Virus record (IMG/VR): IMGVR_UViG_3300033233_000001
Location: 62,001-126,000 of that record
Length of the DNA: 64,000 nt
Direction: 5' to 3' (one strand)
Below the pieces are notes generated by a model. The model worked only from the letters and a program-made list of their open reading frames with translations, was not told where the DNA came from and did no database searches. The position numbers and the translations under genes are program-made. This document shows positions 1 through 54,569 of this stretch, piece by piece. Position 1 is the stretch's first letter, and every line of letters begins with the position of its first letter.

Positions 1-333
1 GCGAAGGCGAAGTTGCCGCCACGTGCGTCTTGAGGTACCGTCTGCGCTGGATGCTCCGATCCATCCACTCGGAGACGCCAGACGCGCGAGCCGCGCCCAC
101 GCTTGCTGCGCCGCGGCCCCGAAGACGGGGCGCGCCGCGCCGGGGAGCATGACGCCGACGTCCGCCGGCAGCAGGCCAGTGGCGATCCAGTACTCGCCGG
201 TCGGCGTGCCGTAGACCGGCTCCGCCTCGTCGATCTCGCGCTCCTGGGCTTCGACGAGCACTTCCGAGCGGCCGTCGAAGATCCACAGGCCGCTGTCGCC
301 GCCCTGGTCCCAGGTGAGGTCGAAGATGCGCAT
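1..333 (-). CDS. hypothetical protein, partial (runs off window start)
   Basis: ATG at 333 overlaps the TGA of the upstream gene (TGATG); open frame MRIFDLTWDQGG... to position 1. Confidence 0.55.
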   Translation of the reverse strand, partial: MRIFDLTWDQGGDSGLWIFDGRSEVLVEAQEREIDEAEPVYGTPTGEYWIATGLLPADVGVMLPGAARPVFGAAAQQAWARLARLASPSGWIGASSADGTSRRTWRQLRLR

Positions 334-23275: not shown

Positions 23276-24246
23276 GTCGCCGGCAGCCGCGGTGGCTCCA
23301 TGATCTTCCCGGTCATGAACCCGAGACCTGCGCCGAGTCCGGCTGCCAGCCACTTGTTGCGGACGAGATTGCCGCTCAGGCCGGCGGCGGCGCCAAGCGT
23401 CGTGAGCAAGATCGTCGCCAGCTGCGACTGCGTGATCGTGATCCCGGCCATGCCGCTGATGGCACGCGTGCTTCCTACGATCTGAGTCGAGCCGTCCGGA
23501 CCGACGATCAGGGTACGCGTGCCGAGCGAGCCGCCGGAGATGGTTAGCGTGCACGGCTGTCCAGTTCGCTGGGCGTTTCCGAGCGCCAGACCGATGCCGG
23601 TCGAGTAGTCGACGTTGCTGGCGATGACCTGGCCGCCACAGGTAACCGTGCCAGTGCCGAGGCTGGTCGACCGCGCCATGAGGCTGGCGCGGTCGACAGA
23701 AGCCGGCAGGACGCCGCTGGGGGTCGTCGCAGCCGGTACGGGCGTAGCTGGCGCCTGGGAGGGCGCGCGCCCGAGCAGCCGGTCGAGCCAGGTACAGCCG
23801 AGGCCGTCGCCGGTGTCGCCCATCGCAGCGGCGCGTATGCGCTCACGCGTCGGCGGCGCGATGCCGCCGCCCAGCCACTTCGGCGACGGACGGCCGATGC
23901 TGCGTGCGTACGCGTCGGCCGCTGCACGCGTTGCCGGCCAGCTGTCGACGACGCAGCCGCCCCACGACGTGTTCGTCGCCGGGTCGTAACCGAAGCTCCC
24001 GCCGAGGCCCATGATGCCGCGGTAGGGATCGAGCCCGTACCTCATGATGTCCGGCTCGCCCGTCACCCACGAGCCGTGCTCGATGTACGGCGCGATCGGA
24101 AGGCCTGCCTCCTGAAGCCGCTGGAAGTTCGGCGGCGCGGTCACGCCAGGCGGGAGTGCCGCGAAACTCAGCTGCCCAGGGACTCCTTTCGCTTGGCCGA
24201 GGCCAGCGAGCGGACGGCGACGTGGACGCGGTGCTCGGTACGACAT
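23272..24246 (-). CDS. multi-GLG-motif protein with C-terminal TM segments (putative structural)
   Basis: MSYRAP start, LAGLGQ, IMGLGG, GDGLGC; TAGGAT 7 nt upstream of ATG. Confidence 0.7.
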   Translation of the reverse strand: MSYRAPRPRRRPLAGLGQAKGVPGQLSFAALPPGVTAPPNFQRLQEAGLPIAPYIEHGSWVTGEPDIMRYGLDPYRGIMGLGGSFGYDPATNTSWGGCVVDSWPATRAAADAYARSIGRPSPKWLGGGIAPPTRERIRAAAMGDTGDGLGCTWLDRLLGRAPSQAPATPVPAATTPSGVLPASVDRASLMARSTSLGTGTVTCGGQVIASNVDYSTGIGLALGNAQRTGQPCTLTISGGSLGTRTLIVGPDGSTQIVGSTRAISGMAGITITQSQLATILLTTLGAAAGLSGNLVRNKWLAAGLGAGLGFMTGKIMEPPRLPAT

Positions 24247-25085: not shown

Positions 25086-25286
25086 CTAGTACGGGATTGA
25101 GGCTATCGCTGCTGCCACGCCGTCGCCTGTCAGGACTGCGCTGCCGTCCTGGTAGGTGACCAGACCGCGCCGCACGAGTCCCGCGAGCGTGCCGCGTGAT
25201 GGGTACCAGCGCCGGCCTGTGTGCCGGTTGTGCTGGCGCTCGCCGTAGAGATGCAGCAGCGCGCGTCGCTGGGCTTTGCTTCTCAT
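25086..25286 (-). CDS. small basic winged-helix-like protein
   Basis: AQRRAL...TLAGLVRRGLV...LT..G pattern; directly downstream of the CRISPR array. Confidence 0.5.
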   Translation of the reverse strand: MRSKAQRRALLHLYGERQHNRHTGRRWYPSRGTLAGLVRRGLVTYQDGSAVLTGDGVAAAIASIPY

Positions 25287-25308: not shown

Positions 25309-25643
25309 GTCACCGGTTTCAGGGCACCGGGCAGCCATTACGATCGAGCGGACCTCGCGATGGGTGACCTCGTCACCGTAGTCGTCACCGGTTTCAGGGC
25401 ACCGGGCAGCCATTGCGATGCGTCCAAGGGGCAGTACGGTGCTCTGCTGGCATTCGCGTCACCGGTTTCAGGGCACCGGGCAGCCATTGCGATCGCGACG
25501 TGGCCGCGGCCTTCTTGCGCTGCAGCGTGGACGTCACCGGTTTCAGGGCACCGGGCAGCCATTGCGATCGACTTCCAGAGCGTCTGCGATCAGCAGGAGT
25601 CTCTCTCGTCACCGGTTTCAGGGCACCGGGCAGCCATTGCGAT
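25309..25643 (-). CRISPR. CRISPR mini-array: 5 repeats of 36 bp (plus strand GTCACCGGTTTCAGGGCACCGGGCAGCCATTGCGAT), 4 spacers of 38-39 bp; no cas genes in window
   Basis: repeats at 25309, 25384, 25458, 25533, 25608; repeat at 25309 has one mismatch (leader-distal); internal CCGGT/ACCGG hairpin. Confidence 0.97.
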
Positions 25644-25840
25644 AGACTCTGAAAAACTCCAATCATGCCGCAGCATTCGGTGCCGTCTTGCGAGCGGGTC
25701 CGTTTTGGTCTCTCGTCGACTCTAGCAGCAGGCCCGTGTTCGTCCAGCCAGTATCCGACATCTGCTTGTTTTGCCTCGTCTTTTTGTTCGTTGCGAGCGG
25801 GTCCGGTACTTTTGCGAGCATCGGGGCCGCTCGCGAGGCG
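25644..25840 (-). promoter_or_regulatory. CRISPR leader
   Basis: T-rich tract; 15-bp direct repeat TTGCGAGCGGGTCCG at 25688 and 25791, further TTGCGAGC and inverted GCCGCTCGC. Confidence 0.75.
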
Positions 25841-25841
25841 C

Positions 25842-28800
25842 TCAGATCAGCGCCAGCTGGTTGTCTTCGCTGGCCGGCAGAGCAGGAGAGGTCGGTGCGC
25901 CCGTGCTCTGCGGCACGAAGCGGAGGTATGGCGACGGCGTGACCGGTTCGCCGCTGATATCGTCTCCGTGCGTGTACGTGCTGATCCAGCACTCATCGCG
26001 TGCGCGCGTCACCGCCACGTAGAAGCATCGAAGTTCTTCGCGCTCGGTCCCCCATGGGACGGGCCAGTTGGCCGCGACCATGCCGGGAATGAACGTGACT
26101 GGGTACTCAAGGCCTTTGCTGTTGCACCCGTCGAATCCGTTCTGGAGGAAGCGGCCATGGCCCGGAACCTCGATGCACATCGCATCACCGACGTAACGCT
26201 CGATCTTTTCGATTTGATCGTGATGAAATGCTAGGTCTTCTGACAGCCCAAACTTTCGCGCAACGTGCCTAGAGACGTAACCACGGCTCACGGCATTTGC
26301 ACGGTCGAACTTGGTTGTGGCCGTCCGTGGCAACGCGCGCGCAAGTGTCTTACTCATTGGAATCAGCGTGTTGGTTTCTGGACTGACCGCGGCGTTTGAT
26401 TGGCGATTCTTCCGCGCAGAGACGAACCCGATTCGAGACGCAAAGACAGCTGCTTGTTGACCGTATGCGTCCACGCGCCACGCATCATGCAGCCGGCCGG
26501 CCGTTTTCATCCGCACCTTGAAGCGAGACGTGATGATTCCATGTCGCAGTAGCAGCTGCTGCACTCCGAAGCCGATGTCGCGGTACTTGGTCGTAAAGGC
26601 AATGTGGTCCATGCGACCATCGTCCTTGATATTGACCGTTGCATCCTCGAACAGGCCTCGCAAGAACGCGACCTGTGTCTGTCGTGACGTTTGCCAGATC
26701 GTCTCTGGGATGGCTTTCTTGTGCGGGCTTAGCCCACCAACGGAGCGAAGCCAGTCAGCGATCATTACAGAACACACTTCGGCGTTGTACCATCCTGTTC
26801 GTTTGCCTGGCACGTACCACTTTGTTGCGTGCACTCTTGGACCAAAGATGCGACAACACAAGTCGCCGAACCGATCGATGACATCGAGGTCAGCCTTTGT
26901 GGTGCGAAATCCACTACGAAAAACCGTACCGTCGGCTACCATGAGACCCAGGAACTCGGCCACTTCTTCCGTTAGATGTTTTGGAATCGTGTGACGAACG
27001 GTGCGGATGTCGAGGCCGCCTGGTGCTAGCGGCATGCGCGGGGCGCGGCCGCGTTGTCTTCGCTCTGTTCCTAGTTTTAGACGTAGAAAGTCGCCCACTC
27101 GCAACGTGGCGGCCGGCACTGGTACGTACGATGAGCCGTCCCAGGACATCAGGCCGTGGTCGCTGGTGACAGAGATCTCGTATCCGTAACGCGTCGTCAT
27201 GCGAAGCATCTTGCACTTTGCGTAACGCACCGGTGCTTGGTACTGTCGCATTCCAGCCGTGGTCGCGACGGTTCCGGTGTCATGCGCTAGGGAGATAGGT
27301 GTCGTGCCGCGGTCTGTGTCAACGAGCGTCTCCGGGCTAACGCACTTATGAATGGTAATCACCGACACGGCGTTACGGCTCTGCGCGGCCGCGCGCTGCT
27401 GTGCGCGCATCTCGTCGACGATCGTGAGCATGACCTCGACGGTGTCGAAACCCTCGGCGAACGACCGGATGCGCGCCATCGTGTTGGTGAAGCTGCTCGA
27501 TTCGTCTCCCTCTGCCTGCTCTCGCCTGTGCCACTGCACGTACTGCGTGCGGTCGATGATGCGTTCGAGCAGTTGTGCCGGCGTCGCGCCCCGTAGCATC
27601 GAGCCGCGCCACTCCTTGATCTGCTCGACGAACTGGAACGCCGCGTCTCTCGCGCGTCCGTGGTAAGCATCGCAGCGCTCGATGCGCTCGGCCCAGTCGC
27701 CGTCGCTCTTGTCGACGCGCGCGACCGAGTCGACGAACGCTCTGCCGAGGTAGCGACTCGGATTCGTGAGTGCTTGGTAGAGGTCGTCTTCTTCCGCCTT
27801 ACCGAGGATGAGTCGAAAGTACGCGAGCATGGCCTTCGCCTCCTTGAGGCCGAAGAAGCTCGTGCCGGAGACCATGCGGAGCGGGACCTTCTGCCGGAAG
27901 AACTCTAGCTCGATATCCTTCGACTGCGCGTTGAGGCGAATGAGAATGGCCATGTCTCGCCACTCACGGCCGCGGCGTTTCTGCTCGGCGCAGAGGTTGG
28001 CGATCGCAGCGGCCTCGACCGCCGAAGTCGAGGACGTAAGTCTGCCGACGAAGCCTCGGATCTCACGCGTCGGTTTGAGATGCATCGGGAGCTTGTCGTT
28101 CGGGGCCATAGCGTCGAGTACGCGGTTGCCGCAGTCGAGGATGTCGCTGCCGGAGCGGAAGTTCTCTTCCATGTAGACGGCGCCGCAGCCCCAGCGTTCG
28201 GCAAACGATAGTAGATGTTCCGGGCGAGCCTGTCTGAACGAATAGAGCGCCTGCCCGGCGTCGCCGACCACTACGAGGTTGCGATGCCCAGAGGCTAGTA
28301 GCTCGATCAGCTGCCACTGTGCTTCGCACAAGTCCTGCGCCTCATCGACGATGATGTAGTCGTAACGCTGCTGCCAGATCTGCCGGATGTCCTCGTCGTG
28401 CTCGACGATGCGCGCTGCTTCCCAAAGGATGTCGTCGAAGGTCGCGAACGGGAAGCCGTTGGCGCCCTCGACGCGGCCGGCGCGCCGTGCGTTATCGGCA
28501 GCGTAGAAGAGGCGGATCAGATCTTCGATGCCGTGCCTCGGGTCACGCTTCTTCTCGATGATGATGTCAGCCGCCGCGAGCAGGTCGGTGTGGACCTTGC
28601 TGAGATCGAAGTCGCCGCTCAGCGGCGAGAACGGCAGCGGCGGGACGGGCAGATAGTCGTTCCGGACCTTCGAGGAGAACGCCTTCACGAGGTCGACGTC
28701 GGGCTTCTGGATGCCGAGGCTCGCTGCGGCCTCGCGAATCGCCTTGTTCCACAGCGCCTCGACGTTGCCATAGTTGGCTGACCTGTTCGACTCCTCGCTT

Positions 28801-29129
28801 CGGTACACGAGGAGCGCTAGGCTGTGGAGCGTGCGGGCTGGGTCGTCTTCGAGACCGACGCCAGGAAGCCGCTTCTTGAGCTTCTTGTTCAGGTCTTCGG
28901 CGGCCGAGACGTTGAAGGCGACGATGCAGATGCGCGAGAGTCGCGCGCCGTGGTACTCGACGAGGTGAGCGACGCGCTCAACCATGCAGGTCGTCTTACC
29001 GCTCCCAGCCACGCTGCCTGCTAGGAGCGGGCCGTCCTTGTGCTGGACGATCGCGCGTTGGGCGGGCGTGAGCAGGTCGACGAGCTTCGGCGGCTCGACC
29101 TTCGGCGCCTTCTTCTTCCTCGCGGCCAA
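25842..29129 (-). CDS. uvrD: UvrD/PcrA/Rep SF1 helicase containing an intein
   Basis: AGSGKT, VDEAQD, VGDAGQALYSFR, ENFRS, TIHK/SKGLEY, YVAVTRA; likely TTG start at 29129. Confidence 0.92.
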   Translation of the reverse strand: MAARKKKAPKVEPPKLVDLLTPAQRAIVQHKDGPLLAGSVAGSGKTTCMVERVAHLVEYHGARLSRICIVAFNVSAAEDLNKKLKKRLPGVGLEDDPARTLHSLALLVYRSEESNRSANYGNVEALWNKAIREAAASLGIQKPDVDLVKAFSSKVRNDYLPVPPLPFSPLSGDFDLSKVHTDLLAAADIIIEKKRDPRHGIEDLIRLFYAADNARRAGRVEGANGFPFATFDDILWEAARIVEHDEDIRQIWQQRYDYIIVDEAQDLCEAQWQLIELLASGHRNLVVVGDAGQALYSFRQARPEHLLSFAERWGCGAVYMEENFRSGSDILDCGNRVLDAMAPNDKLPMHLKPTREIRGFVGRLTSSTSAVEAAAIANLCAEQKRRGREWRDMAILIRLNAQSKDIELEFFRQKVPLRMVSGTSFFGLKEAKAMLAYFRLILGKAEEDDLYQALTNPSRYLGRAFVDSVARVDKSDGDWAERIERCDAYHGRARDAAFQFVEQIKEWRGSMLRGATPAQLLERIIDRTQYVQWHRREQAEGDESSSFTNTMARIRSFAEGFDTVEVMLTIVDEMRAQQRAAAQSRNAVSVITIHKCVSPETLVDTDRGTTPISLAHDTGTVATTAGMRQYQAPVRYAKCKMLRMTTRYGYEISVTSDHGLMSWDGSSYVPVPAATLRVGDFLRLKLGTERRQRGRAPRMPLAPGGLDIRTVRHTIPKHLTEEVAEFLGLMVADGTVFRSGFRTTKADLDVIDRFGDLCCRIFGPRVHATKWYVPGKRTGWYNAEVCSVMIADWLRSVGGLSPHKKAIPETIWQTSRQTQVAFLRGLFEDATVNIKDDGRMDHIAFTTKYRDIGFGVQQLLLRHGIITSRFKVRMKTAGRLHDAWRVDAYGQQAAVFASRIGFVSARKNRQSNAAVSPETNTLIPMSKTLARALPRTATTKFDRANAVSRGYVSRHVARKFGLSEDLAFHHDQIEKIERYVGDAMCIEVPGHGRFLQNGFDGCNSKGLEYPVTFIPGMVAANWPVPWGTEREELRCFYVAVTRARDECWISTYTHGDDISGEPVTPSPYLRFVPQSTGAPTSPALPASEDNQLALI
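26121..27344 (-). mobile_element. intein (408 aa) with LAGLIDADG homing endonuclease in UvrD
   Basis: TIHK|CVSPET... TSDHGL ... FLGLMVADG, FLRGLFED ... FDGCN|SKGLE; lower GC. Confidence 0.92.
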
Positions 29130-51855: not shown

Positions 51856-51875
51856 GTGTGTCGCAAGCCCTTGAC
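51856..51875. promoter_or_regulatory. bidirectional promoter box GTGTGTCGCAAGCCCTTGAC
   Basis: identical 20-mer at 57938; TTGAC -35 on plus and TTGCGA -35 on minus. Confidence 0.75.
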
Positions 51876-51905
51876 CGTCGCGCTGGCCTCGGGCACCGTC
51901 TGCCC

Positions 51906-54569
51906 GTGGGCGCGACCTTCGACTTCCTCCGCCGAGACGCGGCGGCCGGCTGCTATCACGTCGAGAATCCTCTCGGACTCGACGTGCGCCTCTTCGCGAA
52001 CGCCGAGGTCCACTTCGAGAAGTCGGCGTTCCAGCAACTGTTCGACTTCCTCGACGTCTCGCGTGCGGTGAGCGATCTGCGCGAGGCCGAAGCCGCTGGA
52101 CGCGTTTCGTTCTTCGGGGACGCCCCGGCCGGCATCGACAAGGTCGTGCTCACGCCGGACTTCCACAAGGGCTCGCTGGTCCCCGTCGGCACGGTCGCGC
52201 GTGCCCAGCATTTCTGCATCCCCCAAGCGATCGGGAACGACATCTGCTGCGGCATGCGGTTGCTCGTGACTGACCTGCCGGCCGAGGCGCTCGACCCGTA
52301 CTGGCCGGAGATCCAGAAGCGGCTTCGGGCGATCTTCTTCGCGGGCGAGCGAAACATCCCGATGTCGCCGCGGCAGCGCGAGGCGGTCCTGCGCGATGGT
52401 CTGCCGGGACTGCTGCGCACGGCGGGGGACAACGAGAAGACGGGCATCTGGACGCGCTTCGATCCTGTTGCCGAGAGGGAGAATCTTTCGCGCGCGCATG
52501 ACGAGGGGCACTTCGAGACGCGGCGCCTGTTTGGGTTCGAGAGCTTCATCGAGGCCAGTGGGCGCGTCGATGGGCGCGACCCGCAGATCGGCTGCGTCGG
52601 CGGAGGCAACCACTTCGTCGAGCTTCAGCGGATCGACGCTCTCTTCGACGGGCACGCTGCGCGCGCGTGGGGCATGTCGAAGGGGTGCTTGGCCATCATG
52701 GTGCATTCGGGGTCGGTCGGGCTCGGGCACGCGATCGGCGGGCACTTCATGGGCCGTGCGCACGAGATCTTCCCGACGATCGTGAAGGCTCCGGCTGGCG
52801 GCTTCTATCCGCTGCCGACGAGCGGGCCGCGAGCGGAAGAGGGTCTGTTCTATCTCGACGGCATGGGCAACGCGGCGAACTTCGCGTTCGCGAACCGGCT
52901 GTTCCTCGGCCTCATGGCGGTGCGCGCGATCGAAGAAGCATCCGGACGTACGCTATCGACCAAGCTCGTCTACGACGCGCCGCACAACCTCGTGTTCCGT
53001 ACCGGCGACTCGATGCTGCACCGCAAGGGCGCGACGCCTGCGTACGGGCCGAGCGGCGACGACTACCATGGACGGCCATGTCTAATCCCAGGCTGTTTCG
53101 CTGCGGGCACGCGGATCCTGATGGCCAACGGCCACTACGAGAGCATCGAGAACATTCATCCTGGGGACCGAGTGATTGACGGTGCCGGTAACCCGGCAGC
53201 AGTCCGAAATATTCTACGACGCGGCCGTCGAGACGTATGGCGATACAGAAACAACAACTGGTTCGCCGACACAGTCGCCACGCCGGATCACCTACATTTC
53301 GTTGGCGACTTCTCTTCGACGCCTAATGCGCAGTCAGTCGCAGGACGTTTTAAGCCTGATGGTCGCCGGTCATACTCGTTCACCAGAACAGCAGTATTGG
53401 ACCGGCGGACTAAGAGCGGGGAGAGCAAGTACGCATGGCGGCGTCTCGACGAGTTACCGAAGCGCTGTTACAGCTACGTGCTTCTCATGCCTCGACGCAT
53501 CAACTTCGTCGGCATGAAGCGGACATTCGTTGAATACCGCGAAGGATGGGCGTTGACGCCTAGCTACGATTTGGGATACGTGCTCGGTCTATTCGTGGCA
53601 GACGGCACGACGTACTACAAGCCGGCCGACGGAGGCCAAGTCACCTGGGCGCTTGCCCTGGACCAAGATGAGATGGCTGCAAAACTATCGGCTGCGCTGA
53701 TGTCGATCTTTGCAGTTAAGACGAAACTGTATCGAACGAAAAACGTGCTGCTCGTCGTCGTGCATAATGTTCGTCTTGCGCGGTTGTTCTTGGATTTCGG
53801 CAAGAAGCGCACGAAGGCTCTTCCGGGCCACTTTTGGTGCAAACAGAGGGCGTACACGCGCGGAGTCTACGACGGCCTTTACGATGGCGACGGGCACTTC
53901 AACGCAGGATCGAAGAAAATCACGAATACGTCGGTCGCGTGTATTGAGCAGTTCATGATCATTCATCATCTGCTTTTCGGATATCTGCCGTCGATTAGCG
54001 TGCGCCCGCCGTCTGCCGGCGGCCTTGCGGAGCGCGGGTGTGACGTAAAGCGCTGCGGTCCATCTTACCGGGCGACCTCTCTCGGCAAACCTCCTTTGTC
54101 TAGGCTGTATCAGCTGATCGAGATGAGGCGTGTAGACAGGAAAAAGCGCAGCGCGTTGGTGTACGATCTCGAACTCGATGGGCCCGAGCCGAGTTTCATC
54201 GCGAACAACGCGATCGTGCACAACTCGATGGGAGCAGCCAGCTACGTACTTGCCGGACAGGGACGCGAGGATGCGTTGGAGAGCGCGTGCCACGGTGCGG
54301 GCCGAGCGCTGTCGCGCGGGAAGGCCACGCACGTCGACAGGGACGTGTACGAGCGGGAGATCGGCAAGCTCCGCGTGGTCGGGCCGATCGACCCGCGCTC
54401 GCCGCGGATCGCACGGCGACGTGACATCGTCGAGGCCTACGAGAAGCGGCTGATGGAAGAAGCTCCGTACGCGTACAAGGCGGTCGAGCCCGTCGTCGAT
54501 TCCGTCGAGGACGCGCAGATCGCACGCAAGGTCGCGCGGCTCATGCCGCTCTGCACGGTGAAGGGTTGA
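51906..54569 (+). CDS. rtcB: RtcB RNA ligase (3'-phosphate/5'-OH) containing an intein
   Basis: PDFHKG, DICCG, GGGNHF, HSGS, HN, HRKGA, IPG/SMG, CHGAGR, EEAPYAYK, terminal KG; likely GTG start 6 nt after the -10 box. Confidence 0.93.
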   Translation: MGATFDFLRRDAAAGCYHVENPLGLDVRLFANAEVHFEKSAFQQLFDFLDVSRAVSDLREAEAAGRVSFFGDAPAGIDKVVLTPDFHKGSLVPVGTVARAQHFCIPQAIGNDICCGMRLLVTDLPAEALDPYWPEIQKRLRAIFFAGERNIPMSPRQREAVLRDGLPGLLRTAGDNEKTGIWTRFDPVAERENLSRAHDEGHFETRRLFGFESFIEASGRVDGRDPQIGCVGGGNHFVELQRIDALFDGHAARAWGMSKGCLAIMVHSGSVGLGHAIGGHFMGRAHEIFPTIVKAPAGGFYPLPTSGPRAEEGLFYLDGMGNAANFAFANRLFLGLMAVRAIEEASGRTLSTKLVYDAPHNLVFRTGDSMLHRKGATPAYGPSGDDYHGRPCLIPGCFAAGTRILMANGHYESIENIHPGDRVIDGAGNPAAVRNILRRGRRDVWRYRNNNWFADTVATPDHLHFVGDFSSTPNAQSVAGRFKPDGRRSYSFTRTAVLDRRTKSGESKYAWRRLDELPKRCYSYVLLMPRRINFVGMKRTFVEYREGWALTPSYDLGYVLGLFVADGTTYYKPADGGQVTWALALDQDEMAAKLSAALMSIFAVKTKLYRTKNVLLVVVHNVRLARLFLDFGKKRTKALPGHFWCKQRAYTRGVYDGLYDGDGHFNAGSKKITNTSVACIEQFMIIHHLLFGYLPSISVRPPSAGGLAERGCDVKRCGPSYRATSLGKPPLSRLYQLIEMRRVDRKKRSALVYDLELDGPEPSFIANNAIVHNSMGAASYVLAGQGREDALESACHGAGRALSRGKATHVDRDVYEREIGKLRVVGPIDPRSPRIARRRDIVEAYEKRLMEEAPYAYKAVEPVVDSVEDAQIARKVARLMPLCTVKG
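53094..54224 (+). mobile_element. intein (377 aa) with LAGLIDADG endonuclease in RtcB
   Basis: LIPG|CFAAGT...TPDH...LGLFVADG, DGLYDGDG...IVHN|SMG. Confidence 0.95.

Follow-up and report, generated by a model that had tools for sequence, protein, structure and literature searches.

CRISPR arrays are made of near-identical direct repeats of 23-47 nt, regularly spaced and separated by unique spacers of similar length. Virus arrays without an effector are known and, to our knowledge, the documented cases copy class 1 or type II host systems. Described viral mini-arrays carry one or two spacers, repeats identical to those of a host array and spacers matching related viruses, and viral repeat units inhibiting Cas proteins have likewise been documented (PMC11656645). 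Type V-M (formerly V-U1) systems, enriched on plasmids and found in some prophages as well (PMC11656645), typically lack adaptation genes and work without a tracrRNA (PMC11013384). Their effector, Cas12m, works with a 36-nt scaffold derived from the repeat, reads the last two bases of this scaffold, processes its own pre-crRNA and binds DNA without cleavage (PMC10442227, PMC11013384, PMC11656645); through binding of phage DNA it protects cells from phages (PMC11013384).

The stretch of DNA analysed here, hereafter the window, comprises 64,000 nucleotides, bases 62,001-126,000 of one 297,749-bp contig (IMGVR_UViG_3300033233_000001). Positions are those of the window unless given as genome positions. 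The feature under study is confirmed as a genuine CRISPR mini-array on a phage, and is compared below with the systems above and with two further CRISPR-like loci of the same genome.

The array and its place in the phage genome

By repeat finding and exact or near-exact scanning, a 36-nt repeat, GTCACCGGTTTCAGGGCACCGGGCAGCCATTGCGAT on the plus strand, occurs five times in the window at spacings of 75, 74, 75 and 75 nt. The copies enclose four spacers of 38-39 nt, all unique, as is general for CRISPR arrays. Four of the five copies are identical and the left-most, ATTACGAT, carries one change. Folded, the repeat has a stem of 5 bp, a loop of 8 nt and a tail of 4 nt. The array and its neighbours, all on the minus strand, are as follows.

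25086..25280, minus: 64-aa ORF downstream of the array (ORF call)
25309..25344, minus: repeat 5, terminal and degenerate (one mismatch), distal end of the array (repeat scan)
25345..25383, minus: spacer 4, 39 nt, no target found
25384..25419, minus: repeat 4, identical to repeat 1 (repeat scan)
25420..25457, minus: spacer 3, 38 nt, no target found
25458..25493, minus: repeat 3, identical to repeat 1 (repeat scan)
25494..25532, minus: spacer 2, 39 nt
25533..25568, minus: repeat 2, identical to repeat 1 (repeat scan)
25569..25607, minus: spacer 1, leader-proximal, 39 nt, no target found
25608..25643, minus: repeat 1, leader-proximal, ATCGCAATGGCTGCCCGGTGCCCTGAAACCGGTGAC as read on the transcribed strand (repeat scan)
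25644..25841, minus: leader, ~198 nt, non-coding, from the uvrD stop codon to repeat 1
25688..25702, minus: leader box 2 (CGGACCCGCTCGCAA), with CTCGC core
25793..25835, minus: leader block 1, 43 nt, CGCGAG-hairpin-CTCGC element
25842..29129, minus: UvrD-type helicase with intein, the co-oriented array lying directly downstream (Pfam)

The rescan recovered everything that the first-pass annotation had listed for the array itself, namely five repeats, four unique spacers, a degenerate distal repeat and a leader of ~200 bp with a duplicated sequence; the duplicated element is the 15-mer TTGCGAGCGGGTCCG, at 25688-25702 and 25791-25805. The array is read on the minus strand because the degenerate repeat sits at the end far from the leader, because homologous arrays elsewhere read in that orientation, and because the leader matches loci in which gene, leader and array are co-oriented. 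Spacer 1 is presumed, from its leader-proximal place, to be the newest. The repeat had been given as 36 bp, possibly 37. Of these the shorter value stands, since five of the six spacers of this array and of a second copy (below) start with G and one with A, and since the homologous Cas12m-associated repeats are 36 nt long and end in GAC.

The helicase is a protein of 1095 aa matching Pfam UvrD-helicase at 8.4e-42 together with intein/LAGLIDADG models. The position between uvrD and a small gene is as annotated; the description of that gene as wHTH-like is unsupported, the 64-aa ORF (25086-25280) having no Pfam match and no detectable counterpart in a related phage. LAGLIDADG homing-endonuclease inteins interrupt UvrD (window 25842-29129), RtcB (window 51858-54569) and a ResIII-type helicase (genome 275662-279630).

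The whole replicon, metagenome contig Ga0334722_10000009, has 297,749 bp at 65% G+C, with a CheckV completeness of 90%. Its last 126 nt (297624-297749) equal positions 11-136, the first 10 nt misfit, and the record is listed as linear. Given this 126-nt overlap of its ends, the contig is probably a complete assembly, either circular or circularly permuted. The sole sequencing run containing the contig is a DNA sediment metagenome, in which the unitigs break at the repeats. The contig is an IMG/VR virus record, and its gene content, with inteins in several replication and repair genes, RtcB, Ro60/TROVE, NAMPT, adenylosuccinate synthetase and many ORFs without a family match, fits a huge phage. 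No near-identical DNA is present in GenBank phages or plasmids. A tRNA with anticodon CTA, of the amber-suppressor type, lies at window 58861-58935 (tRNA-Pyl by ARAGORN; Rfam tRNA, 63 bits), and a release-factor (RF-1) gene lies near the Cas12f-like locus of a related phage contig (L034); stop-codon reassignment is possible in this phage group. ARAGORN also places a tRNA-Ala (CGC) at window 23598-23674, without an Rfam call at the gathering score; the related phage has a counterpart of this stretch that is 82% conserved (L029 11976-12047).

One related phage fragment was found, of 106,780 bp, with a UvrD 77% identical and synteny around uvrD. The distance from uvrD to the next gene is 380 bp in the relative vs 795 bp in the phage with the array, and leader, array and repeat are all absent throughout the relative's 106,780-bp fragment. 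A syntenic relative without the array at this site is consistent with insertion of the array unit after uvrD, as the first-pass annotation had proposed; loss of the unit in the relative, rather than insertion in the array-bearing phage, is possible.

The identical repeat recurs three times at genome 131193-131376, outside the window and 44 kb from the first array. This second array is in the opposite orientation and holds two spacers, differing from those of the first. Its leader is identical to the first at 195 of 200 positions (97.5%), and the copied segment begins within the last ~27 nt of the uvrD coding sequence. The uvrD 3' end is native at the first site, as the UvrD of the related phage ends alike. 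Because the leader segment of the second array carries this 3' end, the array together with the leader and these 27 nt was copied later from the first locus to the site 44 kb off. All seven non-terminal repeats of the two arrays are identical while the leaders differ at 5/200 positions, which fits either constraint on the repeat or array turnover after duplication. None of the genes adjoining either array is CRISPR-related. At 3-5 kb from the second array come a tyrosine integrase (window 63847-64000, the gene running to genome 126908), a gene for endonuclease VII and a short TnpB-like ORF, which together may form a small mobile island. The short TnpB-like ORF, at genome 127215-127916, is a 233-aa open frame with a TNB domain only, and is probably a fragment.

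Effector searches and the other type V loci of the genome

Six-frame searches of the whole genome with Cas1, Cas2, Cas4, RAMP and Cas6 models gave 0 matches at E <= 1. PADLOC, run on 384 predicted proteins in three batches with key cas families also searched singly, returned no class 1 or adaptation family among the families listed. Among the families listed, every cas label (Cas12f, V-U and a 'Csx1' model that is mislabelled) fell on a TnpB-like protein, apart from generic DEDDh and PrimPol models that carry a CRISPR-associated label. The same model and PADLOC searches (among the families listed) bear out the first-pass annotation in that the 64-kb window holds no cas genes. No cas12m was found beside the array or elsewhere on the replicon by tblastn with a Cas12m-like protein, and the matches of the Cas12u1 model are confined to the C-terminal 384-530 region of the phage's TnpB-like genes. 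Six TnpB/Cas12f-like genes are present in the genome, with 25-36% mutual identity where BLASTP aligns, and downstream of none of the six does the repeat of the orphan array serve as a guide-RNA 3' end.

The replicon does carry CRISPR effectors. A periodic-repeat scan of the genome gave two further CRISPR-like loci, one built around a Cas12f-like gene with its tracrRNA and array, the other around a TnpB beside a mini-array, neither being cognate to the orphan repeat. The earlier description of the array as Cas-less therefore holds in that no cognate effector, adaptation or class 1 gene was found genome-wide, and has to be qualified in that these two loci are present. A cognate cas operon elsewhere on the replicon was looked for as well, and none was found on the probably complete 298-kb genome. 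The Cas12f-like locus, outside the window, consists of the following.

genome 169725-170028: array of the Cas12f-like locus
genome 170091-170126: anti-repeat of the Cas12f-like locus
genome 170288-171805, minus: Cas12f-like effector, 505 aa

The gene is followed by ~260 nt and then by an array of four good copies and one decayed copy of CTCGACAGGCGAGATCGAAGGGTCAAGCAGGTCGGG. The anti-repeat pairs with the repeat of its own locus at -50.5 kcal/mol, with 0/300 shuffles as good (z -5.65), and this strong pairing marks a tracrRNA arrangement. The 505-aa protein itself gives a PADLOC V-U3 match at 1.5e-26, and its family profile matches AsCas12f structures at E ~1e-40 over nearly the full length. 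The family is rare, with 39 homologues. Where the downstream sequence sufficed, two homologue loci had repeats: a 392-kb phage with a 5-repeat array and a tracr-like region, and a 5.8-kb contig with irregular repeat copies and an anti-repeat. The tracr-like region is conserved across the examined loci of the family.

In all 36 aligned family members (36/36) the first RuvC Asp is replaced by His (MALHRG vs MGIDLG in AsCas12f), the RuvC Glu and second Asp being retained in nearly all, for a His-Glu-Asp set. The phage's four full-length TnpB-like proteins retain the first RuvC Asp. The same Asp-to-His change deprives Cas12m2 of one Mg ion and of DNA cleavage (PMC10442227), and the 505-aa protein may be a DNA binder or silencer rather than a cutter. 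A gene of ~200 aa (genome 171802-172422, minus) overlaps the start of the Cas12f-like gene, likewise in every examined homologous locus (L034, L035, L037, L039-L041). It has no real family match, only a sub-threshold DivIC match here and weak coiled-coil-type matches in homologues, and its product may be a conserved partner protein. Farther upstream, ~2.5 kb from the Cas12f-like locus, lies the gene for a Ro60/TROVE protein with a vWA domain (genome 174275-175999), as in the related contig L034.

The leader of the orphan array resembles this locus. With 93% identity, the 43 nt of leader block 1 match the 5' stem-loop of the tracrRNA region that follows the 505-aa gene. In six aligned leader-repeat junctions, from the phage's three arrays and three Cas12f-like loci of other elements, a CTCGC core ~52 nt upstream of the first repeat is invariant. 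These alignments show the leader to be a recombinant, made in part of tracrRNA/leader sequence from the Cas12f-like locus of the phage itself. It lacks the anti-repeat and most of the tracr scaffold. An ungapped pairing scan found no anti-repeat for the orphan repeat anywhere in the genome, and duplexes of the orphan repeat are no better than shuffles, at z +0.96 with its own leader and z +0.89 with the tracr region of the Cas12f-like locus. The nearby anti-repeat expected of a type V-F array was thus lacking at the orphan array and present at the Cas12f-like locus, which served as control (z -5.65). The finding of no anti-repeat genome-wide and of 0 matches for Cas1, Cas2 and Cas4 agrees with type V-M, where tracrRNA and adaptation genes are wanting. 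It had been supposed that the leader may allow acquisition of new spacers; this has no support, as Cas1, Cas2 and Cas4 genes are missing and the leader is homologous to the phage's own Cas12f-like tracrRNA/leader region, not to a host leader.

The remaining locus (genome 48435-50511, outside the window) holds a typical TnpB at 48.6-50.3 kb, of 429 aa per database, with hundreds of homologues that are ~46-58% identical and annotated as transposases. It is flanked by a third 36-nt repeat family, GTAGAAACGGATGCTCCGATCCATCCCTTCGGAGAC, with one full and one partial copy upstream and three copies downstream, the latter beginning 28 nt past the TnpB stop codon. Solitary copies of the same repeat lie at window 41-76 and genome 204952-204987. 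The arrangement looks like a TnpB guide-RNA 3' end that has begun forming a mini-array.

Relatives of the repeat and targets of the spacers

Exact searches of viral, genome and metagenome collections with the full repeat, its 5' 18-mer, its 3' 20-mer and its 3' 28-mer returned only the phage's own contig. The repeat is absent from 185,579 reference genomes and from other metagenome contigs, no exact or degenerate match being a true array, and Rfam CRISPR-DR families give no match to it even at E <= 10. The search of bacterial genomes for a host prediction therefore yielded none, and the supposition that the array points to the host is not supported. Loci of Planctomycetaceae and Acidobacteriota MAGs returned by a degenerate three-block search of reference genomes were rejected as CRISPR, their repeats being palindromic or tandem and their 'spacers' repeated or self-complementary. 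Two Planctomycetaceae MAG contigs (L043:5322-5654, L046:4310-4528) show 72-74-nt periodic repeats with a unit start, TCGCAACGGCTG, like that of the orphan repeat; these too are not CRISPR arrays, as the 'spacers' are palindromic, mutually complementary or identical.

A degenerate IMG/VR search with the 5' block of the repeat found one other element, the viral contig IMGVR_UViG_3300044796_000261 of 59,962 bp, which is circular since the arrays at its two ends have a spacer in common. Its repeat, GTCGCAATGGCTGCGAGGAGCCTTGGATGCCTCGAC, is identical to the orphan repeat at 25/36 positions (shuffles 9.6 +/- 2.6), and its array starts 19 nt past the stop codon of a 567-aa protein matching PADLOC Cas12u1 (V-U1) at 5.7e-55 and PDB Cas12m 23vw at 1.1e-31. 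Three further homologues of the 567-aa protein (72%, 62% and 51% identical) have repeats starting within ~25 nt of the stop codon, leaving no room for a tracrRNA. Arrays are clear at the 72% and 51% loci, and the 62% locus shows two repeat-like copies before the contig ends. The orphan repeat is 24/36 identical to the repeat of the 72% locus, aligns roughly with that of the 62% locus and is 17/36 identical to that of the 51% locus. By hand alignment it is 12/36 identical to the repeat of the Cas12f-like locus and 20/36 to that of the TnpB locus.

Conserved across the five aligned repeats are the 5' block, the 3' AC and a portion of the loop, with A6, G9-C11, G20-C22, A27 and A35-C36 invariant. 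The 5-bp stem covaries over the five sequences, 92% of cells being paired and 4/5 pairs changed on both sides, a score that no shuffle attains. The two unpaired cells both belong to the orphan repeat, which has 3/5 pairs in the register of the four Cas12m-associated repeats (columns 14-18 with 32-36) and forms an alternative 5-bp stem there, slipped by one base and with a bulge. With such a slip, Cas12m might not accept the orphan repeat. Matches of 25/36, 24/36 and 17/36 to three Cas12m-adjacent repeats, the 36-nt length, the conserved 5' block and the 3' GAC place the orphan repeat in the family of 36-nt repeats that lie directly downstream of cas12m in other mobile elements. The putative link to Cas12m derives from the similarity of the repeat to those of a few loci, and the exact repeat is seen beside no cognate effector.

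The spacers matched GenBank phages, the phage's own genome and the related phage at chance level only, in line with the first-pass annotation, which had seen no spacer match in the window. In IMG/VR, searched with 24-mers of two spacers, and in the full contig no target was found, and cross-targeting with the 60-kb Cas12m element is at chance level. Two candidates were set aside: the match of spacer 2 to the related phage is due to chance, 20/22 extending to only 25/39, and a 16/17 match between genome 34638-34654 and the 5' end of spacer A2sp1 is no better than the background seen with the other spacers. Spacers matching related viruses, a mark of mini-arrays that co-opt a host system, were not seen against GenBank phages, the one related phage and the 60-kb element.

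Explanations for the array and comparison with known systems

The reading preferred here, at a probability of roughly one half, is that of an orphan, tracr-independent, type V-M-like (Cas12m-type) mini-array of a ~298-kb huge phage that needs Cas12m in trans. Minus-strand transcription of the array would start in the leader or run on from uvrD, and the pre-crRNA would be cut and loaded by a Cas12m that a plasmid or prophage of the same cell, or the host itself, provides in trans. This effector would then bind PAM-adjacent DNA without cutting it, and the phage guides would silence transcription or replication of competing mobile elements matching the six spacers; alternatively the guides could merely occupy the resident Cas12m, keeping it off the phage. 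The absence of an anti-repeat fits a tracr-less Cas12m. Against a Cas12m assignment, the leader resembles Cas12f-like loci, whereas Cas12m loci have almost no leader. The repeat, moreover, turned up at no other place in the viral, genome and metagenome collections, and the spacer searches described above gave no protospacer for any spacer.

The shared leader could instead mean that the arrays are satellites of the phage's Cas12f-like system, their crRNAs being used in trans by the 505-aa effector and its tracrRNA. The 43-nt block (93%) and the -52 CTCGC box in common with the effector-array interval, the retention of the box in aligned homologous loci of other elements, similar spacer lengths and a repeat 5' end resembling that of the family member L041, GTCGCAACGGCT, favour such satellites. 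They appear unlikely, however, since the orphan repeat is only 12/36 identical to the effector-adjacent repeat, the tracrRNA pairs strongly with its own repeat (-50.5 kcal/mol, z -5.65) and with the orphan one no better than with shuffles (z +0.9), and the orphan leader is without an anti-repeat and most of the tracr scaffold. A Racr-like RNA decoy, in which abundant repeat RNA soaks up plasmid or host Cas12m otherwise silencing the phage, would agree with the missing effector, with a repeat near to, yet not canonical for, the Cas12m repeat stem, with the protection of cells by Cas12m through DNA binding (PMC11013384) and with documented viral Cas-inhibiting repeat units (PMC11656645). Known Racrs, though, are mostly single repeat units, there is no known Cas12m partner, and the two arrays, with six different canonical-length spacers and a distal repeat in decay, have the look of a working system, so that a decoy seems doubtful.

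Equally the arrays could be decaying, disused relics of a lost phage-borne type V locus, as no effector, tracr, targets or adaptation genes were found, the leader is a patchwork and the canonical stem register is broken. This is improbable given that 7/7 non-terminal repeats are identical though the leaders differ at 5/200 positions, and given that the different spacers of the two arrays indicate a unit propagated and changed after duplication. The first-pass annotation had seen a resemblance to type I-G (I-U), in which case the array would carry repeats of a host system, co-opt its Cascade-like machinery and gain spacers through the leader by host Cas1-Cas2. The general precedent of viral mini-arrays copying host repeats (PMC11656645) and the difference in spacer content between the two arrays are all that can be said for it. 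RAMP and Cas6 models gave 0 matches, no class 1 family is among the PADLOC families listed, the repeat occurs in no reference genome or metagenome contig and has no Rfam CRISPR-DR match, the related repeats found all adjoin Cas12m (type V-M), and the leader is homologous to phage type V loci; a host I-G origin is highly improbable.

An extended form of the Cas12m-type reading is put forward tentatively. The phage would keep guide-only V-M arrays, with a leader recombined from its own Cas12f-like tracrRNA locus, and would hijack the nuclease-dead Cas12m of a resident plasmid or prophage, while itself carrying a His-for-Asp Cas12f-like silencer and a TnpB with an array-forming guide-RNA end. If so, plasmid silencing machinery would be redirected against the phage's competitors in a three-way conflict of phage, plasmid and host. 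The simpler Cas12m-type orphan array would, if true, extend guide piracy to a DNA-binding, non-cutting and mostly plasmid-borne effector, and link phage and plasmid conflicts. The locus also shows shuffling of leaders and arrays among different type V systems inside one genome. In this one phage three stages from TnpB to CRISPR are found together, namely a TnpB whose guide-RNA end is repeated, a Cas12f-like protein that has a tracrRNA, and an orphan array free of tracr, and the genome can serve as a compact test bed for the origin of new type V systems.

Among known systems, viral mini-arrays such as those of Saccharolobus portogloboviruses (PMC11656645) are likewise short, effector-less and on a virus genome, with a presumed use in inter-element competition via another replicon's effector. 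Unlike those described, the orphan arrays have 4 + 2 spacers, no known host array and no match to the one related phage or to the database viruses searched. Racr, solitary phage repeat units (PMC11656645), are similar in being repeat-bearing RNA of a phage without a matching Cas protein. The orphan arrays differ as full arrays with diverse spacers, yet the same genome has solitary copies of another repeat family (GTAGAAACGGATGCTCCGATCCATCCCTTCGGAGAC). With type V-F Cas12f and its tracrRNA (AsCas12f, PDB 7WJU/8J12) the leader blocks are held in common through the phage's Cas12f-like tracrRNA/leader region; the orphan arrays depart from it in having no anti-repeat and a different repeat, and the phage's Cas12f-like protein in having His for the first RuvC Asp. 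From the type V-M Cas12m systems of plasmids and prophages (PMC11013384, PMC10442227, PMC11656645) the orphan array is set apart by the lack of cas12m on the phage, by a ~200-nt leader from a Cas12f-like locus in place of the ~20-nt gap and by a stem slipped one base. It is like them in its 36-nt repeat with conserved 5' block, internal stem-loop and 3' ...GAC, in having neither tracrRNA/anti-repeat nor adaptation genes, in spacers of 35-39 nt and in a repeat 25/36 and 24/36 identical to those ~20 nt downstream of Cas12m-like genes. What is unusual here is the combination of a virus-borne, effector-less array, probably of Cas12m type, with a recombinant leader and two other type V-derived systems on the same genome.
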